Shown piece after piece: positions 1 through 41,042 of a DNA stretch of 64,000 nucleotides; within the stretch, counting starts at the first letter, position 1, and each line of letters opens with the position of its first letter. Origin of the DNA: Anthoceros angustus (taxonomy: Eukaryota; Plantae; Anthocerotophyta); contig VJWM01000068.1 of the NCBI GenBank assembly GCA_010909165.1, positions 434,001-498,000 of the forward strand, written 5' to 3'. The translations under genes were made by a program, and so were the position numbers. The notes beneath the pieces are model-generated. The model saw only the letters and a program-made list of their open reading frames with translations. It was not told the DNA's origin and ran no database searches.

Positions 1-30
1 TGTTAGACTTTCCTTGATAGACACCCTGGG

Positions 31-36
31 AGGAAG
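31..36 (+). repeat. Target-site duplication, left copy (AGGAAG)
   Basis: Immediately abuts the left TIR; the same hexamer abuts the right TIR. Confidence 0.95.
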
Positions 37-63
37 TATGGAATACCGATCTCGTCACACGGG
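37..63 (+). repeat. Left terminal inverted repeat (27 bp)
   Basis: tatggaataccgatctcgtcacacggg is the exact reverse complement of 30080-30106. Confidence 0.97.
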
Positions 64-1149
64 CCCTTTAGGGTTTTTTTCCATTGTGACCAAAGAAGTT
101 TTCCGGCCGCATACGGCGGGAAAACTTCGTACACACTTGACGACATCGGTCGCTCGCTACCGCCTCGTGTCCCGATCTCGCCACTAATGGTGTTTGTGTC
201 GAATCTTTTACGGTTGTGTGTGACACACAATGTTTTCGCTTTTAGGGTCAGTGAGGGCATGGGCCATCGGACATCCTTTCGATGACCCCATCCGCCTGCC
301 GCTTGCCCGCTTGCCATCACGAACCGCCACCGTGGCTTGATGGGAGATAGCGTGAGGAGACAGGCATGCTCGCAAGGCATAGGTGCCCTTCGCCTCGATA
401 GCGCAGCGCCATGTACGCCGCGCTACCGCTATCGCAGCCATCCAGCGTCAGGCGACAAGGGGCCAGCCATACAGCCTCGCGGTAGCGCACACCATCTTCA
501 CAACCAGCCTTTACATTGCACCACAACAAAGCCACCACCGGGCTCAACTCTCAAAACGCCGTAACAAACAAATCCAAATTGTCACCGCCTCCTGTCATGG
601 TGAGCGACAAAATGTCACCGCCTCCTGTGTCATGGTGAGCGACAAATCAATTTTCTCCAGCCTACACCTAGCTCACTCCGGCGGGCTGCAACTGGGCCAC
701 ACGCCTCACACCTCGTGCACCATAGACGCAGCAGGTGATGGCCGCCCACGCCCACGGGTGGCTTCACCTCCGCCCACCGGTGGAGGTATTCGGGCAATCG
801 TCCCTGTGCTCCTGCACTCCCTGCAGTGTTGTTAGTGCCATGTGCACCGATACATGTCCGGAGGAAGTCCATGTCCGCAATCCTTTGCATATGCATTGTC
901 CTCGCCATCTGCGGTTCTGCACAACCCACGCAGCGGCCCATACGATTCGATTCCCCTGCTCGCACAAATGGCGCTGGCGCGCCCTCCCTCCCTCCACAAT
1001 GTCAGAACTCATGACAAAATGAATGGACAGGCGACTGCGATTTGCTCACCGCTCCCGGTCATGGTGAGCGACAAAATGTCACCGAGTGGTGGCATCTCGG
1101 GGCCACGCTTTGTGCATACCGAGGGCCACCCACATCGAACTCCTCGCCA

Positions 1150-1915
1150 TCGCCTCCTCACCATATGCGGGTGGTCGCACCCACCCTTGTAGTCGACCTT
1201 CTTCTTGAATGCGATAGCGAGCACATGGCCGGAATGTCCCCCGCCGGCTGCCCCGATCTTCCGCACCCGTGCCTATTCCATACCGCCTCCAACGCCGAGC
1301 TCCGCCTCATCGTGGCATGAAGGTCACGCAGGAATGGATGTGCTGTGGGTTGGTGATGTCCAGTCACGCTCCTCACCATATCCATCATGTACCCTTGTAG
1401 AGGAATGCCCACTTCTCTCCCAAGGACCGCCAAATGCTCAATCCTCCGCAACCATCCCGCATTCATCGACTTCACCACCGCATAAGGAAAACGACCAACC
1501 TCCTAACTTTTACGGTTGTGCAGAGGGGCGGATGAAGTTGCTTCCATGTGCCCTTGGCCTCGCTCGGTTCATATCTCGCCTCTATTAGGTTGTGCTCGCT
1601 GCGTAGTCCGACCGAATCCGCGGATGCCCAAACTTCCTCACCGCTTCCACATAGGCGTTGAAAATCGTCCCCGCTTGTTATCCTCCAAGACCAACTGTGG
1701 GACGAATGGGTTGCCCCATCTATGGCCCTGCACTCAAGTAGAATTGGTACATCTTGTCATAAGTCGCGACAAGGCAACCATGCAGTGCTGATTGCGCCAC
1801 AACTCCCGCAATCACTTCTTCCTCGCAACGCGAACTGCGAACATCGCATGCCCCCTCTCACGCACTTACAATCCATATGCCACATGTACATGGGTGTCGA
1901 TTGGTATCGGATGCC
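1150..1915 (-). pseudogene. Second (tandem) copy of the transposase catalytic and C-terminal part
   Basis: About 385-1915 repeats about 1915-3420 with many small indels; contains WHMD, FGHPRIRSD, RIEH, GYMMDMVRS and WNRH. Confidence 0.8.
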
Positions 1916-2649
1916 ATGCGCCTCGCGCGCTGGCTATCGCGACCATCCGGCGTCGTGCGCTGAGGGCCAGCCATACGGGCCTCGGCGGTGGCGCACACCA
2001 TCTTCACGAACCGGCCTTTACATTGCACCACAACAAAGCCACCAGGCTCAACTCTCAAAACGCCGTAACAAACAAATCCAAATTGTCACGCTCCCGGGTC
2101 ATGGTGGCGCACAAAATGTCACCGCTCCCGGGTCATGGTGGCGCACAAATCAATTTTCTCCAGCCTACACCTAGCTCACTCCGGAAGCTCGTGGGCCACA
2201 CGCCCCTCACACCTCGTGCACCATAGGGCGTGATGGCCGTCCACGCCCACGGGTGGCTTGACCTCAAATCCAGTGGAGGTATTCGGGCAATCGTCCCTGT
2301 GCTCCTGCACTCCCTGCAGTGTTGTTAGTGCCATGTGCGGCCGATACATGTCGGGAGGAAGTCCATGTCCTGCAATCCCTTTGCATATGCATTGTCCTCG
2401 CCATCTGCGGTTCTGCACACAATGATGGCCCATACGATTCGATTCCCGTGCACACACAAATGGCGATCGCCCTCCTCCCTCCACAATCGTAACCTCTGAC
2501 AAAATGAATGGACAGGCGACTGCGATTTGCTCACCGCTCGGCAATTCTATGCGAGTGGTGGCATCTCGGGGCCACGTTTTGTGCATCTTGAGGGCCACCA
2601 CATCGAACTCCTCGCCATCGTCCTCCTCACCCCCCATATGCGGGTGCAC

Positions 2650-5554
2650 CCACCCTTGTAGTCGACCTTCTTCTTGGAATGCGATGCGAGCACATGGCGG
2701 GAATGTCACAGCCGGCTGCCACGATCTTCCGCACCGGTGCCTATTCCATACACGCCTCCAGCGCTCGAGCTCGCCTCATCGTGGGCATGAAGGTCACGTC
2801 GGGGAATGGATGTGCCGGGGTTGGTGATGTCGATTGCGCTCCTCACCATATCCATCATGTACCCTTGTAGAGGAATGCCCACTTCTCTCCCAAGGACCGA
2901 AATGCTCAATCCTCTGCAACAATCCGCATTCACGACTTCACCATCACTGCAGACAAAGCAGACCAACCTCCTAACTTTTACCTGGTTGTGCACAGAGGGG
3001 CCGCGGATGAAGTTGCTTCCATGTGCCCTTGGCCTCGCTCGGTTCATATCTGCCTCTATTAGGTTGTGCTCTGCTGCGTAGTCCGACCGAATCCGCTGCG
3101 GATGCCCAAACTTCCTCACTGCTTCCACATAGGCGTTGAAAATCGTCGTGCCCGCTTGTTATCCTCCAGCACCAACCAGGGGACGTAATGGGTTGCCCCA
3201 TCTATGGCCCGTGCACTCAAGTAGAATTGGTACATCTTGTCATAAGTCGCGACAAGGCAACCAGGCACCGTCGGTGATTGCGGTCACAACTCCCAATCAC
3301 TTCTTCCTCGCAACGCGAACTGCGAACATCGCATGTGACCCCTCCTCTCACGCACTTACAATCCATATGCCACATGTACATGGGTGTCGCATTGGTGTCT
3401 TGGGCCAGCGGATGCGCCTTGTCGGCCGTCGTGCCATGTGCTCCGGCCGCATCAAACGCAGCCTGGCACCGCCTCCTTGGGATTTCGATTCCATCCACAG
3501 CCTGCACGAATCGTATTCCAGCGTTCACGCTGCCGGTGATGGGTGTGTGCGTGGCAATCACTGCAGACAAGGAAAACGCACTACCTCCTAACTTTTACAG
3601 TTGTGCACGGAGGGGCGGATGAAGTTGCTTCCATGTGCCCTTGGCCTCGCTCGGTTCATATCGCCTCTATTAGGTTGTGCTCTGCGTAGTCCGACCGAAT
3701 CCGCGGATGCCCAAACTTCCTCACCGCTTCCACATAGGCGTTGAAAATCGTCGTTCCCGCTTGTTATCCTCCGGCACCAACGAGGACGTAATGGGTTGCC
3801 CCATCTATGGCCCGTGCACTCAAGTAGAATTGGTACATCTTGTCATAAGTCGCGACAAGGCAACCAGGCACCGTCGGTGATTGCGGTCACAACTCCTGCA
3901 ATCACTTCTTCCACCTGCGCGAACTGCGAACATCGCAGCCCCTCCTCTCACGCACTTACAATCCATATGCCACATGTACATGGGTGTCGCATTGGTGTCT
4001 TGGGCCAGCGGATGCGCCTTGTCGGCCGTCGTGCCATGTGCTCCGGCCGCATCAAACGCAGCCTGGCACCGCCTCCTTGGGATTTCGATTCCATCCACAG
4101 CCTGCACGAATCGTATTCCAGCGTTCACGCTGCCGGTGATGGGTGTGTGCGTGGCAATCACTGCAGACAAGGAAAACGCACTACCTCCTAACTTTTACAG
4201 TTGTGCACGGAGGGGCGGATGAAGTTGCTTCCATGTGCCCTTGGCCTCGCTCGGTTCATATCGCCTCTATTAGGTTGTGCTCTGCGTAGTCCGACCGAAT
4301 CCGCGGATGCCCAAACTTCCTCACTGCTTCCACATAGGCGTTGAAAATCGTCGTTCCCGCTTGTTATCCTCCGGCACCAACGAGGACGTAATGGGTTGCC
4401 CCATCTATGGCCCGTGCACTCAAGTAGAATTGGTACATCTTGTCATAAGTCGCGACAAGGCAACCAGGCACCGTCGGTGATTGCGGTCACAACTCCTGCA
4501 ATCACTTCTTCCACCTGCGCGAACTGCGAACATCGCAGCCCCTCCTCTCACGCACTTACAATCCATATGCCACATGTACATGGGTGTCGCATTGGTGTCT
4601 TGGGCCAGCGGATGCGCCTTGTCGGCCGTCGTGCCATGTGCTCGGCATCAAGCAGCGCCTCGTCACTGCCTCCTTGGGATTTCGATTCCATCCGATTGCA
4701 CACTGCACGAATCGTATTCCAGCGTTCACGCCGTCTTGGGTGATGGGTGTGTGCGTGGCAATCGGCGTGCACACCTCCTCCACGGACAACCTCCCATACA
4801 CCCGCGCCATGCCGCAGCCGCAGGAGCCTCGTCACCGTGCTCAAGCTGCAGCCTAGCTCCGTCGGTAGGCCTTTCAATGGCCTCCCTGCTTGCAAGTGCT
4901 GCACCGCCAAATCGTACACAGTTTGCGGTGTAAGGCGCGCGCTCAGCCCGCCGCGTCTCCTATGCATCCCTTCATCTCCCCCTTCCAGCCCCTCATCCCC
5001 ACCTGGCTGCTCGCACGAGAATTGCCTGAAGTGTTCACCGTCCGCATGATGATGGGCTTCCATGACCTCGATGCGGCCGTCTTTGGCGCCGCCCACCATC
5101 TTCCTCCTTCGGCCCCTGGAAGGCCGCCGGCCCATGGGCACCCTTCACTGCCGTTTTGCCCCACGTGATGGCCAAGGTGGAGACTCGGTGGCCTCAACAC
5201 CTCCAGACCTCGCGCCGCCTACTTGCATGGGAGCGCTTTTCCTGCCCATGCGCCTTCCTCCCGCTCAAACCCCAAATGCACCTCTCTGAGCAGTAGGCGC
5301 GATTTGATCCTCCTAACACTTTCCGCCCGAGTAATGGCATGTCCGCAGCCAAGGGTTTCAGACAAAGGGATCGACCGGCGTATGCCCACTCCGATTTTTT
5401 GTTCCGCTGGGACGGTCCGCCAGTTCAAGCGCTTGCGGGACGGGGGTTTCCACACCGCGGCTGCATCTGCAGAGGTAGACTGCCTGCAGCAAGTTCCTGG
5501 CTGAAAGCGCCCGTAGCTATCACGGTTTACTTTTCGTTTCCGCATTTCATTCAT
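2650..5554 (-). pseudogene. IS3EU-type DDE transposase (HTH + integrase core), intron-containing, frameshifted and internally duplicated as assembled
   Basis: Pieced across frames: MNEMRKRKVNRD start (5554); HTH LAVQHLQAGRPLKGLPTELGCSLSTVTRLL; RLSVEEVCTPIATHTP..NAGIRFVQ; PMYMWHMD (D1); YDKMYQFYL..AIDGATHYV.WLVLEDNKR; FNAYVEAVRKFGHPQRIRSDYAAEH (D2); NFIRGPSVHNQ|RIEH (E); GYMMDMVRS..DITNP..WNRH. This follows the WHxD..IDG..P.R.RSD..S.HNQRIE..WN.H pattern of this family. GT-AG intron 2914-2981 lies between HNQ and RIE; a GTAAGT donor follows WHMD. Confidence 0.88.
2950..4760. repeat. Three tandem ~600-bp copies of the transposase core segment
   Basis: Lines starting at 3361, 3961 and 4561 are identical; period 600 bp. 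Confidence 0.92.
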
Positions 5555-5814
5555 TGTTTGAAGTGCAGCCACAAGTGCACTCCAGCAACACTTCCAAACC
5601 AGCGCACGCACCAAACACCGCTGTCCGTATGTGAACAATCTAGAATGGGCCGCTCGCCGTGCAAACACACTTGCGTCCTGCCCATGCGCCTTGTCGGCCG
5701 TCGTGCCATGCGATTCTTTGGCGCCGCCCACCGAGGCACCTTCACTCTTCAGCCGCTTCGCAAACCCGGCAATGACAACCGCCTTACCTCAATGCGCAGG
5801 GTTCCACGACGGTC

Positions 5815-6950
5815 CTCTGCGAACATCGCAGCCCCTCCTCTCACGCACTTACAATCCATATGCCACATGTACATGGGTGTCGCATTGGTGTCTTGGGCCA
5901 GCGGATGCGCCTTGTCGGCCGTCGTGCCATGTGCTCGGCATCAAGCAGCGCCTCGTCACTGCCTCCTTGGGATTTCGATTCCATCCGATTGCACACTGCA
6001 CGAATCGTATTCCAGCATTCACGCCGTGCCGGGTGATGGGTGTGTGCGTGGCAATCAGCGTGCACACCTCCTGCACGGACAGCCTCCCATACACCCCGCG
6101 CCATGCCGTGTGCCGATGCAGGAGCCTCGTCACCGTGCTCAAGCTGCAGCCTAGCTCCGTCGGTAGGCCTTTCAATGGCCTCCCTGCTTGCAAGTGTTGC
6201 ACCGCCAAATCGTACACAGTTTGCGGTGTAAGGCGCGCATGCAGCCCGCCGCGTCTCCTATGCATCCCTTCATCTCCACCTTCCGGCCCTCATCCCCACG
6301 GCTCCTCGCACGAGAATTGCCTCAAGTTTTCACCGTCGCATGATGATGGGCTTCGCCATGACCTCGATGCGGCCGTCTTTGGCGCCGCCCACCATCTTCC
6401 TCCGCCGTCGCTGGAAGGCCGCGCGCGTCCATGGGCACCCTTCACTGCCGTTTTGCCCCACGTGATGGCCAATGTGGAACGGTGGCCTCAACACCCTCCA
6501 GACCTCGCGCCTTCCCGTCTGATGGGCGCTTTTCCTTGCCCCATGCGCCTTCCTCCCGCTTCAAACCCCAAATGCACCTCTCTGAGCAGTAGGATTTCGA
6601 TCCTCCTCCACTTTCGCCCGAGTAATGGCATGCAGCCAAGGGTTTCGTCGGGGCGCTCGATCATTGTTAGCGTATGCCACTCCGATTTTTGTTCCACGGA
6701 CGGTCCGATTCAAGCGCTTGCGGGCGGGGTTCCACCGCATCTGCAGAGGTAGATCACTGCAGCAAGTTCTGGTGGCGCCCGTAGCTATCACGGTTTAATT
6801 TTCGTTTCCGCATTTCATTCATTGTTTGAAGTGCGACCACAAGTGCACTCCACCAACACTTCCAAACCAACAGACGCACCAAACACCGTCTGTATGTGAA
6901 CAATCTAGAATGGGCGCTTCACGGCGTGCAAACACACTTGCGTCCTGCCC
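5815..6950 (-). pseudogene. Duplicate copy of the transposase N-terminal/HTH part
   Basis: About 5820-6950 repeats about 4530-5680, including the LKGLPTELGCSLSTVTRLL HTH and the MNEMRKRK start. Confidence 0.8.
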
Positions 6951-6969
6951 ATTTTACGGGCCATCGACA

Positions 6970-9450
6970 ATTAGCGATGGCTGCCTCTCCTATCTTCACT
7001 CTTGATGCTTCGCAAACCCGGCAAATGACAGAACCTGCTGTCTTACCTCAATGCGCAGGGGTTCCACGACGGTCCTCGGTGCGAACAAAAAGGCATGGGA
7101 TCTTCTAGCTATCACAGCGTATCCCGTGCGACCCCCCATTGTGTGGCATGCCCTGATAATCAGGTCACATGCTTCCAGCGTTTGGAATACTCCCTCTTCG
7201 TTCGATTCGAAGTCCATGTAACATATGAAATGCTCCCCTGTACACGAACGGCAATGACCGCGCCCACAAAAATTGTGTTGATCCAACTCCTCGGGAGGAT
7301 GCTCAATGTCCCAACCGCCGACAAACGAGCCTCACGCATGTTCCAATGCCGTGGCCCGGTCCACAGCACATGTGACGCCGGTCCCATTCCGCCCAACCGC
7401 CTCACCACTAGCTTCCAACTCCACTTCTCCGATTGCGTAACATCCATCGCTATCATTCCCTCCACTGCGACCATAGGGTGCCATCCAACCCGCTTTTCCT
7501 CCACTTTCGAACGACGGTGATTGCCGAAAAGGCGCCCTTCTCTCGAAAACTCCCACACAGAAGCCTCCATTGACTTCTCACAGAGCATGGTCACAGCTGG
7601 CGTTCCTATCTCGATGGTCAGGCACGCAGATTGCAATCCTGGGTCTTCGCGAATTGCATCCACAACGGCACCAACGTGCCATGCCAGTTCTTTGGCGCGT
7701 TCCAGCATTCCGTGCCCCATGCGTGCATGACAGCCTGCCCACCGAGGCACCTTCAGCTCCACCTCCAACCCAGACCTCAGTGGCTGTGGGCCACAATCTG
7801 TCCTCTCCACAGCAGCGAAAATGAAATCTTTGTGCATTGCGGACAACGCTGGAACCTCCAATACCATGAGTACCCATTTCCCCGGACCAGCATCGTGCCA
7901 CATTTCTCGCCTCCCGGTGCCATGTACGCTCGCATGCGGAGTCGTGGAGTGGATTTGCCGGGACTCTCCCACTCCCACACCGGCTCCACCGCCGCCCGGC
8001 TTCGAGCCACCGCCGCCCACGGCCTCCTCCGCCCGTCCGCGCATGTGCCGATCGTCGTTCGCATTGGCGCCTTCCGGCGAGGAAGGCGTTCGGCGCCGGA
8101 CGGCCACACGGCAAAACCGCCGCCCGATGACCACGCCACCGCAACCTCCGGTCGGCGCGCCGCCCACGCCGCGGCGGCGCATCATCTTGCCCGGCCCCCT
8201 TCCTCCACCGCCGCCGCTTCCACGGCCTCCTCCGCCGCCGCATCATGCCGCCGCCGCCGCCGCCGCATCATGCCGCCGCCCCTTCCTCCACTTCGCCGCC
8301 GCCGCCGCCGCCCGGCGCCCACCATCCACCTCGCCGCCTCGGATCGCCCCGCGCAGCGACGACGCGCCATCGCCCACGCCTCTCCTATCTTCACTCTTCA
8401 GCGCCGCAAACCCGCAAATGATGAACTGCCTTACCTCAATGCGCAGGGTTCCACGACGGTCCTCGGTGCGAACAAAAGGCATGGGATCTTCCAGCTATCG
8501 AGCGTATCCGTCGACCCCCATTGTGTGGCATGCCACGATAATCGGTCACATGCTTCCAGTTTGGAATACTCCTCTTCGCTCGATTCAAGTCCATGTAACA
8601 TATGAAATGCTCCGTCTGTTGTACACGAACGGCAATGACCGCGCCCACAAAAATTGTGTTGATCCAACTCCCTGGGGAGGATGCTCAATGTCCCCACCTG
8701 CCGACAAACGAGCCTCACTGCATGTTCCACTGCCGCCTGTGGCCCGGTCCACAGGCACATGTGACGCCGGTCCCATTCCGGCCCAACCGCCCTCACCACT
8801 AGCTTCCAACTCCACTTCTCCGATTGCAGAACATCCATCGCTATCATTCCCTCCACCTGCGACCATAGGGTGCCATCCAACCTGCTTTCCTCCACTTTCG
8901 AACGACGGTGATTGCCGAAAAAGGCGTCCTTCTCTGTGACCGAAAACTCCCACACAGAAGCCTCCATTGACTTCTCACAGAGCATGGTCACTGCTGGCGT
9001 TCCTATCTCGATGGTCAGGCACGCAGATTGCAATCCTGGGTCTTCGCGAATTGCATCCACAACGGCACCAACGTGCCATGCCAGTTCTTTGGCGCGTTCC
9101 AAAGATTCCGTGCCCAGGCGTGCATGACACCGCCCACCGAGGCACCTTCACCCACCTCCAACCCACCTCAATGGTCAGGGCCACAATCATCCTCTCCACG
9201 GCGAAAATGAAATCTTTGTGCATTGCGGACAATCCTGCAACCTCCAATACCATGAGTACCCATTTCCCCGGACCAGCATCGTGCCACATTTCGCCTCCCG
9301 GTGCCATGTACGCTCGCACATGCGGAGTCGGTGGAGTGGATTTGCCGGGGTCTCTCCCACTCCCACACCGGCTCCACGGTCGCCCGAGCTTCCGCGAGCC
9401 ACCGCCGCTTCCACGGCCTCCTCCGCCGCCGCCGCTGCGCATGTGCCGAT
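6970..9450 (-). pseudogene. Transposon cargo gene B, unknown protein, two tandem degraded copies
   Basis: Globular-looking peptides recur in both copies (~6970-8050 and ~8380-9450): WHDAGPGKWVLMVLEV..ERAKELAWHVGAVVDAIREDPGLQSACLTIEIGTPAVTMLCEKSMEASVWEFS..FAPRTVVEPLRIE, followed by a GTAAG donor. Confidence 0.55.
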
Positions 9451-10579
9451 CGTCGCGATTGAGCGCCTTCCGGCGAGGAAGGCGCGGCGCCTCGGATCGT
9501 CGAGATCCCCACCGCCGCCCGATGACCACTCGCCACCGCAACCTCCGCCGCCGCCGCCGCACCTCGCCACCGCCGCCGCCGCCGCCCACGCCGCCGCCCC
9601 TTCCTCCACTTCGCCGACTGCGCTGTCCTCCGGCCCGGGCGCCCGACCATCCACCTCGCCGCCTCGGATCGCCCCGCGCAGCGACGACGCTGGCCCATCG
9701 CCCACGCCTCCCGGGCCGCAAACTCGAATGGATCATACCCACCGCACACAAGAGTTGTGAGGCTCACGACGCCGACCGCGCAGCTTACATTTCGACCGGA
9801 GGCCACATAGCCCCGCCGCATCATGCCGCCGCCAGGGCGGCGAGTCAGACGCCCTTCGGAAAGCCGCATCAAGCATGGCCGTGGGCAATGGAGAACGCCG
9901 CCTGTGTGCAATCCACCCTGCAATCAACAGCGAGGTTTGAGAATTCATGGCTGACCGACGCAGATGCAGCATCGCGCACACGGGCTGACCACCTCTGTCT
10001 CCACTTCTAGGTGCACCTCCACAGAGATCGACGTCCAAAACGCCCCCTCCCAAGGTGGGTGCGCCAATCGGTTGATCCTGCCACCGCGGCCAGCAGGCTT
10101 CCACTCCACCTTCCGTTCGGACGACTGCTACGGGTTGTCCATGGCCTCTCCCACTCCTCCTCCGCCGCCATGGCTCCTTCGGCGCCGTGCCGCCGCACCT
10201 CCTCCTCCATCGCCTCCCGCTTCAACGCACCATCATGGCGGGCATTGAATGTGCACGGAATCATAGGTATACTTGCACGGCCTCGGGATCGTCGAGATCC
10301 CCACCGACCGCCTTTACGCCGCCGCCCATTCGCATCCGTGATCCGTCTGCAAGCGCCGCATATGCGCATGTTCACCGCACCCTTCCGCCCGCGCGCGGTG
10401 CAATTGCGATGCCATGCGTGCCACATGCATTCTCGCCACACCGCATTTTCAGCAAACATTGAATGTGCAATCGCGCACGATCGCACACCTTACAACGATC
10501 CGCAACTTAGCGGCACCTCCTCCATCGCCTCCCGCCGCCGCCGCTTCCGCGAGCCACCGCCGCCGCCGCCTCGCAACCC

Positions 10580-11290
10580 TTACTTGCCGCTCACCATCGC
10601 CGTGCTCCGCACCATCACGCCATTCCCAACCGCAACCAGATTACAATTTTGTGCCTTCACGGCCGGCACTTGGTTCTCGCTTCCACCGCCGCACTCGCAT
10701 CCTCGCCAAGTACTCAACATGGTTCTCCGTCGCCGGTTGATATCCCGGAACAACGCCTCCGTCTTCTCATTCCATTCCATTTCTCCATACCGCGAAATCA
10801 ACCAATTCATAATACCTCATAGGCCACCTCTCCACGGTCGGTGGCACTCGATGCGTGCACTGGAAAACCAAATCCTAAGGTCGTCAACAGTTTCTGGCAG
10901 CTCTCCTTTCCGGTACCTCTTCCATCCCGACGGCGGCCAACTGTCGAACACTTGGTGCATGAAAATGTGGCACTCCACCGGTAGGCACTCGCAGAATTTG
11001 TCCACCGCCACTCCATCCGGTCTCCCTCGCCGGCAGTCGACAGACGGCAAGTTTCTCTGGATAGCCCTCTATGCGCAGACACGGCTTTGATGGTCCTCCA
11101 CAAATGCCAAGAACTCGGACAGCTCCCGAGTTGATGGGAACCATAGGCCACGCAGAATGTACTCGCGAGCTTTGCATCTCCCATTCCTCCCGCCGCCCCT
11201 TCCACGCGCCGCACAAGGCCGTGCGCCGCCAGACCGCAAACATGCGCATCCGGCACCGTGATTTGCGCGGTCATCTGACATGGCTCCGAC
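10580..11290 (-). pseudogene. Transposon cargo gene C, unknown protein, frameshifted
   Basis: Consecutive ORF pieces read as one protein: REYILRGLWFPSTRELSEFLAFVEDH..DKFCECLPVECHIFMHQVFDSW..ELPETVDDLRIWF..YEVLMNWLISRYGEMEWNEKTEALFRDINRRRR. Confidence 0.45.
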
Positions 11291-11799
11291 TACCTACTCA
11301 CCGCCGCCACCTTCCACTCTTCAAGCGCAACCGCCAGCCGGAACACACCAACCCACCGGCCGCCTCGCTCGCCGCCGCCGCCACGATCTTGTGTTCCTCA
11401 TCCTCCTCCACGGCACGGGCGTCGGGCGCGTTGCCCTTTCCACCCACCGCCACCCGGCCGCGCCTTCCTTGCACGTAAATGTCGCACCCGTTTCCCTTCC
11501 ACCACCCGCTGCAACCGCCCCTTCCACTCCTCCTCCTCCGTCGCGGTTGATCCCGCCAAGTACTCGAACATGGTTCTCGCTTCCACCGCCGGCCGCCCAA
11601 ACCCAACCGCACACGCGTATCGCCACCCACTTCCCTAATTTCACTAACCCCTCCCTTTGGTGGCGTGGTGAGTAGCTCGCACACCACAAACCCCTTTCAC
11701 TTTGAGGCCGCCATACAACCTCCCAATTTTCATTTCCAACCAATCCATCTTCCGCCCAGTGGTGTGGTTTTGATATGCCGGACATACCACCGGAAGAGG

Positions 11800-13500
11800 T
11801 CAAATCTATATACAAAAACCAAAATCATAACCCAAGGAAAAGGTGCACATGGCATGCACATGGTATGTATGCATGATGCATGGTTGCAATCGGATGCACG
11901 TGAACATGTCTACCTAGATCTTGTGTCATAGCGCAATCCATCTATCGCATCGTCATGTCTATACCATCTATGCATCGCATGTCTATGGCATACTATGACA
12001 CATATATAGGTCATCATCTACATAGAAAAACCTAAACACCATAACCCAAGGAAAAGGTCCACATGACATGCACATGGTATGTATGCATGATGCATGGTTG
12101 CATTCGGATGCGTGAACATGTCTACCTAGATCTTTGTCATAGCGCAATCCATCTATCGCATCGTGATGTCTATATGGCAGTACTATGACACATATATAGG
12201 TCATCGCATCTACATAGAAAAACCTAAACACCATAACCCAAGGAAAAGGTCCACATGCATGCATGGTTGCAATGGATGCACGTGAACATGTCTACCTAGA
12301 TGCCGTCATAGCGCAATCCATCTATCCGCATCGTCATGTCTATACCATCTATGCATCGCATGTCTATATGCACGGTACTATGACACATATATAGGTCATC
12401 GATCTACATAGAAAAACCTAAACACCATAACCCAAGGAAAAGGTCCACATGACATGCACATGGTATGTATGCATGATGCATGGTTGCATCGGATGCACGT
12501 GAACATGTCTACCTAGATCTGTGTCATGCGCAATCCATCTATCTCGCATCGATGTCTATATGCACGGTACTATGACACATATATAGGTCATCGCATCTAC
12601 ATAGAAAAACCTAAACACCATAACCCAAGGAAAAGCGCATGTCGTTGTTGTGCATACATATCATTTGTTCAAGGCCAAGGACAAGTATGATAATAAATAA
12701 ACCCAAAGTTTCGACATTCGGTGTGAGGTGGCACGTGATTCAACTGTTCCTTGGTCTTGACATACGGTACCGATAAACATGTCTATATATGTGGCTTCCT
12801 ACCCAATTCATAATTCGATTGTAAGTTTGTTGCATGGAGCAGCATCCATACTGCCCCCGCAGAGGTTCAGGTCAAGTAGACAAGGTCTTGTCTTCTTTCT
12901 CTCTTGTGACCTTTGGGATCCGCATTTTCCGGTAGGAGCCTCGGTCCAAACCCTTGCTATGACGTGTTTCCTTGGTCTTCGACATAAGCGAACATTGTTG
13001 TCATACCACTTGCCATATGCCATGTGATTTGGCTGCAGGGGTGCATGTGATGTGGCTTGTGCATTGAATGTATGGCATGCACATGGTGTGTATGCATGAT
13101 GTATGGTTGGGTTGGCATGTGGTGTATGTCAACATGCCTAGCTAGATGCTGTGTCATGGCACAATGAATCCATGTGCATCGTGATGCATGTGACGCATAC
13201 CATAACGGATATATAGGGTTGCGAACACATATATACGAATACATGAACAACATAACCCAATGAAAAGGGCGAGTACGTGCATCGCATACATATCATTTGT
13301 TCAAGGCCAAGGACAAGTAGGTTTTAAATAGACCTATAGTGCCTACCAAGTGAGAGGTGGCACGTGATTAACCTGTTCCTTGGTCTTCGACACGGTACCG
13401 ATAAACATGTCTATATATGTGGCTTCCTACCCATTCATTATTGTAGAAGTTTGTCCGCATGGAAAGGCATCCATACGCCATGCACTGGCTTCTTTCTCTC
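11800..13500. repeat. Internal non-coding repeat block X (~170-200-bp degenerate units with ACCCAAGGAAAAGG, CATG-rich)
   Basis: ataacccaaggaaaag recurs at about 11827, 12042, 12233, 12427 and 12620; tcatttgttcaaggccaaggacaagt occurs at about 12661 and 13292. Confidence 0.85.
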
Positions 13501-13859
13501 TGACCTTTGGGATCTAGTGGGAGCGTTAGGCAACCAACTTGATCAGGGCCAGCCTCGGTCAAATGCATTGCGCTTGCCTTGGTCTTGGAAGGGACCATTG
13601 TTCATGTGTTCATATAACGAATATGCACCTCCTTCATTATTGTCATTGTCATTCGAGGAGGGAGCTGCGAGGCAGCCCGCAACGTCATCCTCGTTTGAAT
13701 CGCAAGTGCATTGTGTTCTATGGCGGTCGTCGCTGTCCAATTGCACATTCAACCTCGTCCATTGCACATTCAACGCAATTGCCTTTTTCGCATGCTATGC
13801 ATTTGACCAATGTAAGGCATTGTATGCATTTTCGAAATTCTGGCTTTAGGCATTTTGGG

Positions 13860-14100
13860 TTGTGGTCGGCATTTTCAGCTTCTTTGGTTTGTTGGGTGGG
13901 GTGGGTTGGTGCTGGTTGGGGCGGGTTGGGGCTGGTTGGTGTGGGTTGGTGTGGGTTGGGGCGGGTTGGGGCGGTTTGTGGTGGTGGGGCCGGCTGCAGG
14001 GGTGGGGCATCTTGGTGCGGGCTCACGCAGTGGAGCTAACGGTGCCCTCGCGGATGGGCGGATGGGCGGATGGGCGGATGGGCGGATGGGCGGCCGTGGA
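13860..14100. repeat. Low-complexity GGTTG-type tract and (GGATGGGC)n microsatellite
   Basis: Directly visible in the sequence. Confidence 0.85.
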
Positions 14101-14179
14101 GCGGGCCGGGTAAGGGCGGGGAGGACCAGTGCTGGTCGGGATGGGGTCAGGATGTGGGAGTGACCAGGACAAATCTCCG

Positions 14180-17100
14180 AGCCATGAGGCCGCGGGAAGG
14201 GCCAAGGGGCAACCATGCCATCGAAAAATGTGAAGTGACAGATGGCTGCGTTGGCAGGCCAATATGGGCCATGCTCACGGATTTCATGGCAAGCAATATG
14301 GGATGGACTTCATGAGCCGGACTGCAGACCATGGCGCGCACTACGAAATACCTTATAAATGCATAGCCAGGTCGACCTGCGCATGCCTGCAATGCAGCCA
14401 TAGACATCGGATGAGAAGGGCATTTGAATAAGCCAGGGGCACAATGAATTGCTTCCAGAGCGTCAGGTATTGGTGTGCGGTCCGGACACAAATGCTCGGA
14501 GGCGGCGCAGTGATACCGCATCATTTGCCCTATGCGGCCCACTATGTTACTGCGGACCATATCGGACCCAATATGTTAGTGCGACACGCGTACAGATCTT
14601 CGCACATGTGACGCGGAAGGAACCATGGACCCTCCGCCTGCGGCATGTTTGGCGGGCGCCCAGCGGAAGTCAAACGCCGGCGACCCACTACGTCATGTCC
14701 TCTGCAACAACCAGGCGGAAGTGGTGCGGTGAGCGGCAACGCGATGAGGGTGTGGCGTGGCGCGCGCCGCATGGGCGCACTATGGCGGCGCGGCGCAACT
14801 TGTGGAGAGTATTGCAGCCGCATAGCTGCAACGCAGCAATCATGTTTTGCGGGAGCCAAAACTTCGCTGCAATCGCAGCCGGCCCCCTCTCGTAACTCAA
14901 CGATGTACCGCATGCCGGCAGTATGTCGTATGGGATACGGAGGATTATGGACAATGATTTCAGCTTTCCGGCTGCAACCCCACCCTTGAACACCGCCACG
15001 CAATGCTTGCGACATCACCGCCATCGATCTCCTTGCACATGCGCGTCTCGTCCCACAACCGAGGCGCCTCCTGCGGGCGCCTCCTGCGGGCGGCGCGGTG
15101 GACATAAGGTATCGCGGATCTTGCACACAGGCTCCATGGCGTCTAGCGGAAGACACCGTGAGCATTGCACATCACAACCCGCTCGGGCAGCAGACGAAGA
15201 TGAAATTGTGGGCACACAGTTCTTGATGGGCACGCACGAAGGAGAAGACGATCCGCGGATGGAGGCGGATGGAGGCGGCCGTGTCGGCTGCCCTCAGCGG
15301 ATGGAGGCGGCCGTGTCGGCTGCCCGCCTGCCATCGCAGGCCGCGCCGCGAGCCGTTCGCGCCCAGCGGAAGTCAAACGCCGGCGACCCTTGGCGTGACG
15401 CGCCACGCCCAAGATCGCGGACCGCGGACGGCACCTGCCGTCAGCCAAGCTGCCATCGTCGGAGCAGCTCGGAGGTTCAACGTGGTCGTCCCAGGCGGCC
15501 CTTCCACATATGGCGGGAATGGGTGGGAGGATCTCACGCATTCCGCGCCACGCCACATTGGTGGGAGGAGGAGACGGCGCGGAGAGCGAGGCGCCTCCTG
15601 CGGGCGCCGTTGGGACAATCCCATTCACGCAGCGGAATCACGGGTGCGGGTATAGGCCCGCGGAAGAAGCAAAGAGCGGAGGAGGAGACGGCGCGGAGGA
15701 GGCGGGCGCACGAAGTCCCGGATACAAGTACCGACAAGGCTTTCCCAAGGTCGACTTGGGAGATGGAGAAGGCGGCGTTGTCTTCGTGTCCGCGCCGACC
15801 ACGCAGTGGAGCTAACGGTGCCCTCGCATGCCGGGGGCCAGATAACGAACGCCGTCAAGGAACGGCGGTGTGCGCCATTGTTGATGCGTGCGAGGCTCTA
15901 TTCGACAAGCCGTGGCGATGCAGGACGGGCGCTTTGTGGTCCGTGATGCCTTGTCAGCGACACACAAGTCCGGTGTATCCGACATTCTGTCAATTTCCCC
16001 GAAGACACACAGAGGCCGACTGATGCAAATGCTGTACATCCGGGACGTGGACGCGCAATTTACACCTCCGGCGGAGGCGGGAGGCGGCGGCGCCGAGGTG
16101 TACGATTGGGTTCCGGAGGAGGAAGAAGTGGATGTCACCGAGGGATGGGAGGGATAGCGGGCGGCGCGGTGGTCGTGGCGCGCTCGGAGGAAGAGTTCAA
16201 CAACGCTGCCGACCGTCCGCATCCCCGACCTTGAGGCACCGCCAAGATCCCACCCGCCACCGGGACATGTGGGAGGAGGCACAATTTCCTCTCCTCAAGG
16301 CCAACGCAGCGCGGTAGAGCCTGCAGGAGGCGGGCGCACGAAGTCCCGCGCGAGGCGGCGCTGCACGCCTGCTGATGGAGGCGGCGCGGAGGCGGGAGGA
16401 GGCTCGACGCATGGCAACGGACCTTCTTAGTTGTGGAAGAGCTCCGCACACACCACCGCAGTGGGAAGGCGCGCGGCGGCCGTGTCGGCTGCCCGCCGCC
16501 ATCGAGAGGAGCTTCTTTTCTTCAAATTTTGGGTCACTTGCGGAGAAGGCAGAATGGCGATCGCGAACAGATGCGGGCGGCTGCGCTTGCAAGGCTGCAA
16601 CATCTGTGGACACGGCGCAGTACGAACTCGGAAGGGCTCGCATCCGATGGTCCAAGGCATGGACGGCCGGAAATGTTCGACATCGCCACCATCCGGGGTT
16701 CTTCGTGACGCAGCTCCAGCCGGGCTGGTGCGCCTTCTCGAGGACATGGACGACGACCAGACCTTCGATCCATGACGGCGGAAGAGTTGCATAACGCGAA
16801 TAGCACCAACTTGAGGTTCGCGATGGATGAGGAGGAGATGCTCCGATCGACCGCAGCCCACCGCAGTGGGTCGCTTCAGGCGAGGCACCGAGGAAGGCGG
16901 AGAAAGAACGGCGTGACGCGCGCTTGGCATTCCGGCGGAGGAAGCGACGATGCCGCACGCCGCGATGCGGTTTGCGGTGACCGAAGGCTCAGATGCCGTC
17001 CGAACGAGCAGAGCGGCGATTCGAGGACATCCTAACCCTCCGTGAGTGCGAAGATGCCATTATTGCAGGGTGCCTGATGGGGTTCGCAACGCCACGGCTT

Positions 17101-20100
17101 TGGTGATTGCAGGTTGAGGCGGGCATGGAGTGCCAACAACTGTTCGACAATTTCGCGGGCCGGGAGGGACCTTTCCCACCGCTTAGAGTGCGATCGCACT
17201 GCACGGGACATGGTGATGTAGTCCACGAGGTTGGAAGGACGCAGCGGCCTACGAGACGGTGCATCGCCGAGGCTCGGAAGTACTGGAGTCGCCGTCATTT
17301 GTGGACGGCGTGTTCGAACGCAACGCGGGCTCGGCGGTGCTACACATTACCACATCGCCCATGGAGTGCATCCGACCCCTACGGCGCATGGTAAGATATA
17401 TGGCATCAATTGATGCAAAATGTGCAGTGCCGACGACGGCAGATGCCTCCTTGTGCGAGCCATGTTCTTCGCCACCGCTACGTCACCGGCAAATGGCATT
17501 GAGGTGAGTCGTCCCATGACATTTGCCACACTCGACGCACTAGGGAGCCAAAAGGATGGCGTGCACAAGGAGTGGAAGGATGCGGGCACGAGAGGGCGTT
17601 GAAGAGGGCTTTTAAGACGGATATGTTGACAACCACCCACCTCATGGCCATCCTCCAAGAATCAAACGCGGGCTCGGCGAAGAGGAGCAAGAAAGCGATT
17701 TCATCGGCCGCTGGTCCGATGGCGCATGTGCTCCGGATTTTTCAAGCATGTGGCCGACCTGAAGCCCTCGCATGTCCTGGGGCGGCAGGTGGCGCGCATT
17801 CGGAAGAAGGTGCAGGACCGCTTTTATTCACCGGTGCCCGCACGCGTTGGCGGGTGGGTGGGAGAGGGTTCCGGCATGTGGTGCACACTGGACAAGAGGG
17901 CCATGTTGGAGTGTCTAGGGAGTGCACGCTTTGAGAGTGTCACTGTTCTTCACCGCCACGCATGGATGCAGGCGACGCCTCGAGTGAGTGAGATTCGAGG
18001 CGCTTGCCGCAGCTTAGAGAAATGTTCGTGAAATCGCCGAGAGATGTCATTCGGCGATAGAGCTACTGCTCACCTTCATCACCGGCGAGTTTACTTCGCA
18101 GGCCAATGGTGGTCGTGCAAGTTCCTCCGGCATTTGGGCACCGCCTCGAGGACGTGCTCGCACTCTCGCTCCCGCCTATGTCTCAAGCTCGTGATGGCCA
18201 CGCGGGTGAAGCCATCCGCATGAACTCCGTGTATGGGAACGCTTGAAAGGCCGGCCTCGAGTCGGACTGCTTCATTAGAGACCGCAAGTGGTTTTCGAAG
18301 TTGTGTTTGTCTGGCCCCGCACAAGAGGGCACTAATGTGAAGAGACTTTGAGCCGTCCGCACTCGCTTGGTTTGCGATGGCGGATACGAAAACGAGGCAC
18401 CGCACGCATGGATGCAGGCGACGCCTCGACGTGAATTGCTTTCCGTCACCAATTGAGAATGGACAGAAACAAGGTCGGGGCGCAATAATACGGAAAACCG
18501 TAGGGTTGGCGGTGGCATTTGCGCCGGGCCAGGTCGAATGGCGCGGGAACGGAAGTGCAGTCCGCCAGAGGTTCCAATCGGCCGCGGCCTGCCCGACAAT
18601 CACAATGGGCAAATGGAAAGAGGTGCAGGCAGTGAGGTTTTGGAGGCGGAAGGTCTTCCACTGTGGAGCGTGCACCGGGTACGCATGGCGACTGCGAGGG
18701 TGGTGCATCACGAGCAAGGTTGTTGTCATTGCGACAATCCGAGGTGGACAGCTCAAAGTTCTTCTGTACATCGGATGCGAGCTGCTCATAATAGCAATGG
18801 CGCGATTCGGAAGAAGACAACCGCAGAAGTGTGCGACGTGGAAGTGCGGTCGTTCCGAGTGTGCTCACCGATGAGACAGCGAGGTTTGGGCCACCGCATT
18901 CCGCCGGTGAGGTGCCGGGCATGACGCCGAGGAGTTTGACCGCGTGTGGAAGACGGGATGCAGCGCAGGTCGCGGGATGCGGAGGAAGGCGCTTTGGTGC
19001 ATCATCGATGGTGAGCCCACTCGCACGCCGCACACCATCCGCTGTCGCAGCGGTGCCTTATGCGGTGGGAGGAAGGTCCTTCAATGCGCAGTGGAGGGGC
19101 GGCGGTGGCGCGATTCGGAAGAAGGTGCAGGACCGCTTTTATTCACCGGTGCCCGCACGCTTGGGTGGGTGGGAGAGGGTTCCGGCATGTGGTGCACACT
19201 GGACAAGAGGGCCATGTTGGAGTGTCTAGGGAGTGCACGCTTTGAGAGTGTCACTGTTCTTCACCGCCACGCATGGATGCAGGCGACGCTCGAGTGAGTG
19301 AGATTCGAGGCGCTTGCCGCAGCTTAGAGAAATGTTCGTGAAATCGCCGAGAGATGTCATTCGGCGATAGAGCTACTGCTCACCTTCATCACCGGCGAGT
19401 TTACTTCGCAGGCCAATGGTGGTCGCAAGTTCCTCCGGCATTTGGGCACCGCCTCGAGGACGTGCTCGCACTCATCGCCCCGCCTATGTCTCAAGCTCGT
19501 GATGGCCACGCGGGTGAAGCCATCCGCATGAACTCCGTGTATGGGAACGCTTGAAAGGCCGGCCTCGAGTCGGACTGCTTCATTAGAGACCGCAAGTGGT
19601 TTTCGAAGTTGTGTTTGTCTGGCCCCGCACAAGAGGGCACTAATGTGAAGAGACTTTGAGCCGTCCGCACTCGCTTGGTTTGCGATGGCGGATACGAAAA
19701 CGAGGCACCGCACGCATGGATGCAGGCGACGCCTCGACGTGAATTGCTTTCCGTCACCAATTGAGAATGGATGAAACAAGGTCGCAATAATACGGAAACC
19801 GTAGGGTTGGCGGTGGCATTTGCCGGGCCAGTCGAATGGCGCGGAACTAAGTGCGCCCGCCGGAGGTTCCAATCGGCCGCGCCCCGCCCGACAACCACAA
19901 TGGGCAAATGGAAAGAGGTGCAGCGGAGGTTTTGGAGGCGGAAGGTCTTCCAGGTGGAGCGTGCACCGGTACGCATGGCGATCGCGAGGGTGGTGCATCA
20001 CGAGCAAGGTTGTTGTCATTGCGACAATCCGAGGTGGACAGCTCAAAGTTCTTCTGTACATCGGATGCGAGCTGCTCATAATAGCAATGGCGCGATTCGG

Positions 20101-37914: not shown

Positions 37915-40900
37915 CTACTCGCTCAGATTGGGGCCAGTGCACGCGGTCACGTAGCATTCGGCTTTCAACTGCGCGCTTAGATCCTGGAGCACTTGGTACA
38001 GCATCATCCATTGTGGATGCCTGTGGTCTCCTGCGAGGAAGCTGTGCACGTCCTGCTCAATCTGGATCCAGCTCCGGCCAGGCTCTTTCCGGGAAGCCAT
38101 ACTCTTTCTCAGCTTATTGACATCCTCTAGGCACTCCCACATGGCAGCATCAGCGTATATGTTTGCCATGAGCAGGTAGGCAGCTGGATGTTTCGGGTCT
38201 AAGAGCACAGCACTGTTGAACGCCCGCTGCCCTAGTGCCACATTACCATGCTTTCTGCAAGCACTCAGTAGACATAACCACACTGATAGGTCAGGCTGCA
38301 TTGGCATTTGCCCAAGTAGTTCTTCTGCTCTGCTGAAGAGGCTGGCACGACCCACAAGATCAATCACGCACGCGTAGTGTTGCACCTGTGGGGAAATGCC
38401 ATGGCCTGTGCTCATCGTTTGGAAGTACTCCAGACCTTTGTAGACCATCCCGGCATGACAGCAAGCAGAGAGGAGCGCTAGAAAGGTGACTCCATCCGGT
38501 TTCAGGCCTGCCAGACACATGTCCTCATAGCGCTGCAGAGCATGCTCCCAATCCCCTGCTCGGCATACCAGCAATAAGTGCAGTCCATGAGAGCACATTA
38601 TGGCGAGAGGAGCGCTAGAAAGGTGACTCCATCCGGTTTCAGGCCTGCCAGACACATGTCCTCATAGCGCTGCAGAGCATGCTCCCAATCCCCTGCTCGG
38701 GCATACCCAGCAATAAGTGCAGTCCATGAGAGCACATTATGGCGAGGGAGCGATTCAAACACTCGCTGAGCGTCCACCATGCTACCACATTTTCCATAAG
38801 CATGTATGAGGCTGTTCCCCACAGAAAGACTGCACCCAACTCCACTATTCAAGATACGTTGGTGGATATGCAGACAGGTGGGCAAGGCTCCTAAGCTGCT
38901 GCACGCGTGCAGGACAGATAAAAATGTTGCCTCATCTGCCTGGACATCCTCTGCTTGCATCTGAGCAAATAGTTGCAAAGCCTTTTGTCCTTGGTCCTGT
39001 TGGGCATAGGCTGTGATCATTGCAGTCCAGGACACCACATCCCGCGGTGCCAGTCTGCAAAACACCGTTTCTGCTTCCTTTATGCTTCCACACCTTGCAT
39101 ACATTGTTACCAAAGTACTACCCACGAACAAATCTGCAACAAGACCACATTCTATAGCTGCCGAGTGTATTTTGCGCCCCTGCTCAAGTGCGTTCAGTTT
39201 GACAGTCTGGCCATCTACAAATGCAGCTTGCTCCTTTGCAGCAATCAAGCTACATGCTTGCAAGGCCCCAACAAAGGTCCGTGCATCTGGCTCCAAACTT
39301 CCCTCGCCCATATGCTTGTAAATCTGCAGGGCCCTCTCTCCCTGGTCCTGCTGAACATATGCTGCCATCATTGCATTGCATGAGACCACATCCCACTGCG
39401 GTAGTCTGTAAAACACCTGTTCTGCATCTCTGAGACTCCCACACTTTGCATACATACTAACCAAAATGTTCCCAACAAAGCTGTCTGATTCCAAGCCCAT
39501 GAGAGAAGCTTCAGAATGAAATGTTCTCCCCCTTTCAAGGGAGTCCAGCTTTAGATTTTTCCCATCTACAAGTGCCCACTTCTCTTTTTCTGCGATGCTG
39601 CCACACGCCTGGAGTACACTCACAAATGTCCGTGCGTTTGGACTGACCCCTTTCTCTTGCATCTCTCGGTAAATCTGCAATGCCAGTTCTCCGTGGCCTT
39701 GCTGGGCATGCGCTGCAATGATGGCAGTCCAAGACACCACATCAGGTTGCGACAGTCGCTTAAACGCTTGTTCTGCATCCTTGATGCTCCCACATTTTGC
39801 ATACACGGTAACCAAGGTGTTGCCAACATAAATGTCCGACTCAAAACCCAACGCTACAGCTTGAGCGTGCAGGTCCCTGACCTTTTGCAACACCTGCACT
39901 TTCATGTTGTTCTCATCCACGAGACAACTTTCTTCCTTCTCTGCAATGCTGCCATATGCTTGGAGTATGCTGACAAAAGTCCTTGCATTCTGCCTCACCC
40001 CTTCCGCTTGCATCTGCATATAAATCTGCAGGGATTCCTGTCCTCGGTCTTGCTCAGTATATGCTGCAATCATGGAATTCCATAACACCACATCACGCTG
40101 GTGCAGACTGTAAAACACTTGCTCGGCATCCTTGATGCTTCCACATTTGGAATACATTCTGACCAATGTGCTAGCCACAAACAAATCTGATTCAAAACCT
40201 CTTGCTGTAGCTTCAGCATGAAGACTTCTTCCCTTTTGCAGCAACTCGACCTTCAGGTGTTGCCCATTCACAACAGCAGAGTTCTCTTTCTCTGCTACGC
40301 TCCCACATGCTTGGAGTGCACTTACAAAGGTTCGGGCATTGGGTCGGACCCCTTCCTCCAGCATCTGTTCAAAAAGTTGCAAGGCCTCTTCTCCTTCGTT
40401 TTGCTGAGCATATGCTGCTATCATGGCCGTCCATGAGACCACATCACGTTTGGACAACCTGTCAAATACCTGCTGTGCATCCCTGAGGCTCCCGCACTTT
40501 GCATACATGTTGACTAGAATGCTCCCAACAAACCCATCAGACTCAAACCCATGCCTTGAAGCATCAGCATGGACCCGCTTCCCCTCTTCCAGATCTTCTA
40601 ACCTGCTACAAGCTTTCAATAAGCTAACAAATGTGTACTTGTCCGGCTTCACACCTTCCTGCTGCATCTGTTTGTAGCACGAAAGCGCACCCTGATACTG
40701 TCCCATCTTGCTATACCCTGAAATGATGGCTGTCCAGGAAAAGACAGTCCGGTAAGACAATCGTTTGAATAACAGCAGTCCCTCTGCAAAACCCCCGCAG
40801 TTGACAAGAGTAGCGACCAGAAAGTCCCCCAGAAGCCTGTTGGACTCTAAACCATGTTTTGCCAAATGAGCGTGCACATGCTTTGCTTCTGGAAGGGCCT

Positions 40901-41042
40901 TCTTCTTCAAGCACGCTTGCAAGATGCTCTTATAAATATGCACTGAAGGCACAGTTCCCTGCTGGTCCATGCAGACCAAGGCACCTAATGCTTTGTCCAG
41001 CCGTCCTTCCTTGCACAAGGCTTCTAATTCAAGCATGTCCAC
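37915..41042 (-). CDS. PLS-class PPR protein with E/E+ end and no DYW; frame broken by a 137-bp tandem duplication
   Basis: Repeated LVxMYAKCGS..DVVSWTAMIAAYAQ..TFVSALQAC motifs, E domains (HYACVIDLVGRA, VWLCLLSACRKHG) and E+ RKEPGRSWIQIEQDVHSFLAGD. Duplicated segment 38471-38607/38608-38746. Confidence 0.93.

Follow-up and report, generated by a model that had tools for sequence, protein, structure and literature searches.

A probable remnant of an IS3EU/GingerRoot-type transposase gene with conserved intron positions in the hornwort Anthoceros angustus

We analysed a stretch of 64,000 nucleotides from the hornwort Anthoceros angustus (assembly GCA_010909165.1, contig VJWM01000068.1, positions 434,001 to 498,000 of the forward strand), hereafter called the window, in which a first-pass annotation made from the letters alone had noticed a spliceosomal-intron-containing transposase gene at 2650–5554. 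With a probability of about 0.8 this locus represents what is left, dead and rearranged, of a transposase gene from a cut-and-paste DNA transposon of the IS3EU/GingerRoot type in a non-seed land plant. The locus is homologous to transposase genes elsewhere, retains the catalytic motifs, shares its intron positions with its relatives and is visibly damaged. An intact enzyme of this family would bind the terminal inverted repeats (TIRs) of the element via an N-terminal helix-turn-helix (HTH) region and would cut and rejoin DNA by an integrase-like RNase-H-fold core, whose metal-binding triad would consist of the Asp residues in WHMD and RIRSD and the Glu in RIE, with DD35E spacing. The gene has two old spliceosomal introns, one in phase 1 just past WHMD and one in phase 0 between HNQ and RIE. 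The window copy cannot make this protein as its sequence stands, given its staggered duplications, its broken frame, the missing acceptor of intron 1 and the lack of detectable ends.

Catalytic motifs and conserved introns

Reading the window from 5600 to 2600 in three frames on the minus strand, together with a motif scan, established the orientation of the gene (minus strand) and the presence of WHMD, RIRSD and HNQ/RIE, where a slash marks the splice point. The coordinates of these and all other features are collected in Table 1. The catalytic residues had been reconstructed before from the letters, and this reconstruction proved exact; the same applies to the 68-bp GT-AG intron splitting HNQ from RIE, at whose position relatives also hold introns, and to the second donor following WHMD. 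For exon 2 we relied on the Pfam match, tblastn and alignment A1, in which one row is misaligned; the 25-row alignment A3, with misplaced N-terminal exons, was not used. In exon 3 the pieces beyond RIEHF are individually weak (E 0.03–0.3) and match the relatives by their order only. When the last exons of the relatives were compared with positions 1–2700 of the window by tblastn, no match at E≤5 was obtained, so the 3' end of the gene is unmapped past about 2620.

Table 1. Position of transposase gene parts, duplicated units and neighbouring genes in the window.
Feature	Position	Strand	Remarks
Copy A1, middle and 3' parts	428–1908	-	WHMD 1871–1882, exon-2 remnant 1525–1760, RIEHL 1431–1445; more damaged
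Exon 3 remnant	2620–2913	-	starts with RIEHF; downstream short collinear pieces over all three frames, e.g. WNRHR at about 2734–2748
RIEHF (catalytic Glu)	2899–2913	-	TTGTTGCAG directly before
Intron 2	2914–2981	-	68 nt, GT-AG, GTAAAA...TTGCAG, phase 0, between HNQ and RIE
SVHNQ	2982–2996	-	GTAAAAG directly after
Exon 2, best copy (TYDKMYQF ... RIRSD ... SVHNQ)	2982–3247	-	one frameshift near 3149; Pfam rva_4, tblastn, alignment A1
RIRSD (second catalytic Asp)	3081–3095	-	motif scan
WHMD	3361–3372	-	then T/GTAAGT, GT at 3358–3359; phase-1 donor of intron 1
Threefold tandem repeat, unit length about 600 bp	2943–4763	-	2943–3559, 3557–4159, 4157–4763
Copy C1, 5' region and exon 1	4524–5825	-	HTH-like stretch in open reading frame 4548–5141; WHMD 4561–4572; frameshift within exon
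Copy C2, upstream, 5' region and exon 1	5817–7087	-	HTH-region homology 5996–6241; WHMD 5854–5865, then T/GTAAGT
Next chain link	6983–9710		6983–8382 matches 8378–9710 at 84.5%; open reading frames without Pfam family
PPR gene	38598–41042	-	intron-less, 814 aa, intact frame
PPR gene	46452–49652	+	intron-less, 1066 aa, E motif, intact frame

We compared the intron positions with those of related loci from several collections (Table 2). The donor of intron 1, a T directly followed by GT(A/G)AG, has five occurrences in the window and is shared by L001, L003, L006, L014 and the Calypogeia locus L017. The acceptor in the relatives is AG (usually CAG) before C[AGC]TA[TC]G, giving WHMD-S-YDK. An intron of the form HNQ/GT...AG/RIE is present in the window, L001, L006, L014 and L017, and the NCBI gene model of Calypogeia fissa uses both introns. 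L003 reads uninterrupted through HNQRIEHFW. The lineage of L003 (2331–2360; cluster P0004 with 17 members from ENA, Logan and NCBI) has lost the HNQ/RIE intron precisely and kept the WHMD intron. In L015 and L016 both WHMD-S-YDK and HNQ-RIEHFW are contiguous. This is how a spliced transcript would read, and the underlying Logan runs may be DNA or RNA.

Table 2. Related loci and the length of the introns at the two conserved positions.
Locus	Source	Intron 1 (after WHMD+T)	Intron 2 (HNQ/RIE)
Window	Anthoceros angustus	donor present, acceptor lost	68 nt
L001	ENA, 415-kb contig	128 nt	142 nt
L002–L005	ENA, one locus	L003: 93 nt	L003: 0 (absent)
L006–L013	JGI, one locus in several samples	L006: 143 nt	L006: 95 nt
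L014	Logan	96 nt	97 nt
L015/L016	Logan contigs encoding the 370-aa protein P0028; found by word search	L015: 0 (absent)	L015: 0 (absent)
L017/L018	locus of the NCBI protein "unnamed protein product [Calypogeia fissa]", 41.7-Mb liverwort chromosome	L017: 231 nt	L017: 121 nt

The two intron positions thus recur among five other eukaryotic loci, including the annotated Calypogeia fissa gene. Comparison with the relatives thus gives good evidence for a real and old HNQ/RIE intron and for a gene adapted to eukaryotes. The earlier view that the gene is not a contaminating bacterial insertion sequence (IS) is borne out by the shared intron positions as well as by the nearest protein clusters, which are eukaryotic. 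Two spliceosomal introns at conserved positions are also of help for annotation: most automatic calls run into the intron behind HNQ or start late at WHMD.

Protein family and relatives

The open reading frame (ORF) at 2706–3128 on the minus strand, containing about 55 residues of exon 2, scores 28.3 bits (E=1.8e-6) against the Pfam integrase core domain rva_4 (PF24764), for which the gathering cut-off is 26 bits. In the relatives the same family is matched with scores of 53–155 bits (P0028 E=3e-45, P0039 2e-37, exon 2 of L003 2e-33). It is the only significant Pfam family; rve was matched weakly in one relative (E=0.002). The N-terminal part is represented in the window by ORF 4548–5141, which gave a weak match to HTH_23 below the cut-off (E=0.007). 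Exon 1 of L003 aligns to positions 5–138 of the NCBIfam IS481 model NF033577, that is from the HTH through the first Asp, with E=3.7e-5; its 23.4 bits do not reach the IS481 family cut-off of 224. Within residues 1–150 of P0028 there is one Cys and no H2C2 or HHCC pattern ahead of the core.

The catalytic spacing was measured in two contiguous relatives and amounts to D-57-D-35-E in P0028 and D-57-D-34-E in P0039, which supports a triad made up of the Asp residues in WHMD and RIRSD and the Glu in RIE. An AlphaFold2 model of P0028 based on an 8-row alignment was poor and reached a pLDDT (predicted local distance difference test) of 52, with the core under 50 and confident helices at residues 34–137. 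A wide fold search with this model returned generic helical matches only (Z below 7), and searching the PDB by sequence gave no relevant match. The fold is accordingly assigned from the sequence families.

Searching 1.84 billion representatives with the exon-2 ORF by HMMER yielded 8 hits (best E=2.4e-10), all of them fragments of about 100–160 residues. Six of the eight end in "...HNQV...", showing that a prokaryote-style gene caller had read into the intron at the HNQ position. In the Atlas the closest clusters are eukaryotic ones of the rva_4 family that occur most often in Mollusca and Chordata, phyla which include the oyster and fish of the published GingerRoot relatives. Word searches with exon 2 of L014 and with P0028 gave 18 and 7 hits, respectively; the named ones are only two entries, both "unnamed protein product [Calypogeia fissa]". 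Mapped back onto the window by tblastn, the relatives place the HTH region at 5996–6241 and again at about 4694–4813, in addition to the end of exon 1. Residues 33–113 of P0028 match the region at 5996–6241 with E=8.7e-7. Copy C1 is matched both by exon 1 of L003 and by P0028, and copy A1 likewise gives tblastn matches. Exon 2 of the window (3247–2982) is 61% identical to its relatives, with E=1e-18 for exon 2 of L003 and E=2e-16 for P0028.

In the JGI metagenome locus L006 we further noticed a gene for a protein kinase of 256 residues (6617–7387), located 2.6 kb downstream of the transposase exons. A part of it is duplicated in inverted orientation 6 kb further on (6922–7508 and 13415–13984, 91% identity). 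It may be cargo of the element or a neighbour.

Damage and tandem duplications

Three-frame reading and tblastn revealed many frameshifts and stops, and no copy is free of in-frame stops. Instead of the conserved acceptor of intron 1, GCAG/CATATGAC, all four window copies that retain this region have GCGACTTATGAC. In the frame upstream of TYDK there is a stop with no AG after it, which makes the conserved splice of intron 1 impossible as the sequence stands. The unique PPR genes elsewhere in the window have uninterrupted frames of 814 and 1066 codons, indicating that unique genes in the window are well polished.

Self-comparison resolved the region from 428 to 9710 into a chain of tandem duplications, each offset from the next and overlapping it. 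As a consequence WHMD together with its donor occurs five times in the window (motif scan: 1871, 3361, 3961, 4561 and 5854). At its left end 428–1908 corresponds overall to 1933–3399; in self-blast 1181–1908 aligns with 2650–3399 at 90% and 428–1229 with 1933–2698 at 85%. The centre is formed by the three units of about 600 bp. Each of these reaches from inside the HNQ intron back to the middle of exon 1 and so contains one WHMD donor and one copy of exon 2. The copies differ by 5–12 mismatches and 8–12 small gaps per 615–622 aligned columns. Further upstream 4524–5554 aligns with 5817–6822 at 89%, and 5507–5825 with 6775–7087. The last link of the chain (6983–9710) may represent the 5' non-coding part of the element. 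Taken as a whole the duplications resemble a staircase: a unit of about 1.5 kb is followed by three of 0.6 kb, one of 1.3 kb and one of 1.4 kb, every unit begins inside the one before it, and the copies are 85–95% alike and differ chiefly by small indels.

The junction of the 600-bp units (GGCAATC/ACTGCAG, at about 3557 and 4157) shows a 3-bp microhomology (ATC) and is identical in two units. This identical repetition with microhomology argues for a real duplication and against an invention of the assembler. The proposal that 2650–5554 is a single gene had to be abandoned: the interval contains the threefold 600-bp repeat, parts of the gene extend beyond it to about 428 and 7087, and the frame is repeatedly broken. 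For the interpretation of similar loci it should be kept in mind that frame breaks in the repeats of this assembly, where indels dominate, are without reads no proof of pseudogenes.

Element ends and an apparently undamaged copy in a liverwort

No inverted repeat above the level of shuffled controls was found within 1–20000 of the window, and one end of the element possibly lies beyond it. Among the relatives, L001 has inverted arms of about 100 bp with 74% match, which begin TA-CCTAC and TG-CCTAC. The Calypogeia homologue is located between inverted arms of 112 bp with 94% match, 12.5 kb apart. A search for TIRs and target site duplications (TSDs) in L002 and L003 found none. L006–L013 are a single locus and are therefore of no use for defining the ends.

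Upstream of the annotated start, the Calypogeia gene has an open frame of 138 codons, which encodes the HTH region contiguous with WHMD. The annotated transposase model thus starts too late, at MHVWHMD, and omits the open HTH exon 9608–10021. Together with this exon the three annotated exons make up what looks like an undamaged gene of four exons in a TIR-flanked element, judged from its sequence. There is also a second cluster of Calypogeia proteins, eight in number. The question raised along with the first-pass annotation, whether an intact copy exists anywhere, is thus answered differently for the two places: intact-looking copies are present in the bryophyte Calypogeia, none in the window. 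With its apparently open four-exon gene between 112-bp arms the liverwort copy is a possible test case for activity.

The putative Calypogeia element of 12.5 kb spans L017 -359 to 12136 (CBCUJL010000003.1, about 34.281–34.294 Mb), and the motif of its left arm occurs three times. It also carries two annotated genes, coding for 205 and 524 residues and without Pfam hits, which may be cargo.

Alternative explanations

Several observations weigh against a dead remnant of an IS3EU/GingerRoot-type element. The copies differ mostly by indels of 1–4 bp, and in one pair 35 gap events stand against 24 mismatches in 766 bp. Such an indel-dominated pattern is typical of under-polished long-read sequence in repeats, so some of the damage may be artefactual. 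A TIR, a TA terminus and a 6-bp target duplication were not demonstrated for the window copy. Also in the relatives the ends are not fully regular: the 6-mers flanking the arms of L001 differ, and the arms of the Calypogeia element have neither a TA start nor a matching flank of 4–8 bp.

The indel excess would be explained most directly if the gene were intact and possibly active, with the frameshifts and perhaps also the duplications being errors of a poorly polished long-read assembly. Every catalytic motif is still readable, and the unique genes keep ORFs of 814 and 1066 residues as if only the repeats had escaped polishing. However, the loss of the intron-1 acceptor is a substitution-type change common to all four copies, and the 600-bp junction joins non-homologous points by a 3-bp microhomology that is repeated identically. 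In addition TIRs are missing and all copies have in-frame stops. We therefore consider an intact gene unlikely. An integrase fragment of another class, i.e. from a long terminal repeat (LTR) retrotransposon, from Ginger1, Ginger2/TDD or from a Polinton, is a still less probable source. An integrase-like DDE core is common to all these enzymes and one relative shows the weak match to rve mentioned above (E=0.002), but rva_4 is the best and sole significant Pfam family. The N-terminus is of the HTH type aligning to the IS481 model instead of an HHCC zinc finger (ahead of its core P0028 contains just one Cys), and families for reverse transcriptase, protease, capsid or polymerase were not found in the neighbouring ORFs.

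The layout of HTH and DDE core together with the weak IS481 match of exon 1 in a relative might also bring to mind a bacterial IS481/IS3 insertion sequence that entered as a contaminant or by recent transfer. This match has 23 bits against a cut-off of 224, and the two GT-AG introns are conserved in position across eukaryotic loci. Relatives are located on a 41.7-Mb liverwort chromosome, the close clusters are all eukaryotic and the window itself carries plant PPR genes, making a bacterial origin of this kind extremely improbable. A domesticated host gene was considered as well and rejected, as the frame is not open and the locus occurs in multiple copies.

Starting from the decayed IS3EU/GingerRoot-type remnant, we also considered two more far-reaching readings, which we regard as speculative and rather doubtful. 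According to the first the introns would be ancient in a bryophyte IS3EU/GingerRoot lineage that was vertically inherited in liverworts and hornworts (unlisted as hosts in 2019) and has apparently intact, TIR-flanked copies in Calypogeia fissa. According to the second the staircase of duplications would be real and could represent the footprint of template-switching repair after excision attempts and not an assembly error.

Genomic surroundings

The transposase gene had been described as flanked by plant genes. Its immediate flanks hold no recognisable genes: none of the ORFs tested from 7 to 37 kb matched a Pfam family. The closest plant genes that can be recognised within the window are the two PPR genes listed in Table 1. 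Between 7160 and 37627 many ORFs of 200–600 residues are located on both strands, some of them overlapping, which may reflect GC-rich repeat or unannotated element DNA rather than genes.

Comparison with known systems

The transposase had been regarded as a type not familiar from plants. This does not hold, since IS3EU has been a superfamily in Repbase since 2013 (PMC6839031, PMC10045372) and GingerRoot was published in 2019 from non-seed land plants, namely the clubmoss Selaginella lepidophylla and mosses (PMC6839031). GingerRoot elements have TSDs of 6 bp, TIRs of 100–150 bp, mostly TA..TA ends and a length of 3.9–12.9 kb (PMC6839031). Among plants their hosts are mosses and lycophytes, and they also occur in fish, corals, oysters and others (PMC6839031). 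Kojima and Bao showed GingerRoot and the IS3EU of Repbase to be one lineage without HHCC motif that is related to IS3/IS481 (PMC10045372). Fungal IS3EU elements have the termini TAYGG..CCRTA and 6-bp TSDs. GingerRoot is listed as one of the eight superfamilies of plant DNA transposons and as absent from the angiosperms analysed. Introns of the transposase gene are not described in the 2019 paper (PMC6839031), and our literature search found no paper linking IS3EU and hornworts. Concerning the origin of the family in plants, the 2019 paper weighs retention from aquatic ancestors with loss in ferns and seed plants against horizontal transfer (PMC6839031); from our data it may be either retention with loss in seed plants or horizontal transfer. 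By itself the locus matters little, being one more decayed copy of a superfamily already catalogued in non-seed plants. That close relatives of the window transposase are present in a liverwort is a modest gain.

Of the systems compared, bacterial IS481/IS3 elements share the layout in which an HTH precedes a DD35E core, and in one relative exon 1 can be aligned to NF033577. They differ in that this alignment is far under the family cut-off and that the genes considered here have spliceosomal introns, eukaryotic hosts and no visible programmed frameshift arrangement. Ginger1, Ginger2/TDD and the integrases encoded by LTR retrotransposons or by retroviruses have the RNase-H-fold DDE core in common with our gene, as reflected in the weak rve match of one relative. 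In contrast to them it has no HHCC zinc finger, GPY/F motif or chromodomain, and no reverse transcriptase or gag nearby.

Membership in IS3EU/GingerRoot is likely from the architecture of the enzyme, its protein family and its host range, while the superfamily as defined by its ends would be assigned by implication. The window copy differs in being internally duplicated and in showing neither a TIR nor a TSD; TA..TA ends with a 6-bp TSD were not demonstrated in the relatives either. In agreement with the published elements the window gene and its relatives have an integrase-like DDE core without HHCC, YPYY or GPY motifs and an N-terminus of the HTH type, and they are found in bryophyte-grade plants and aquatic animals. 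The inverted arms of the relatives (about 100–112 bp, one pair 12.5 kb apart) are also within the published ranges. The plant hosts published so far are mosses and lycophytes, whereas the relatives described here include a liverwort.

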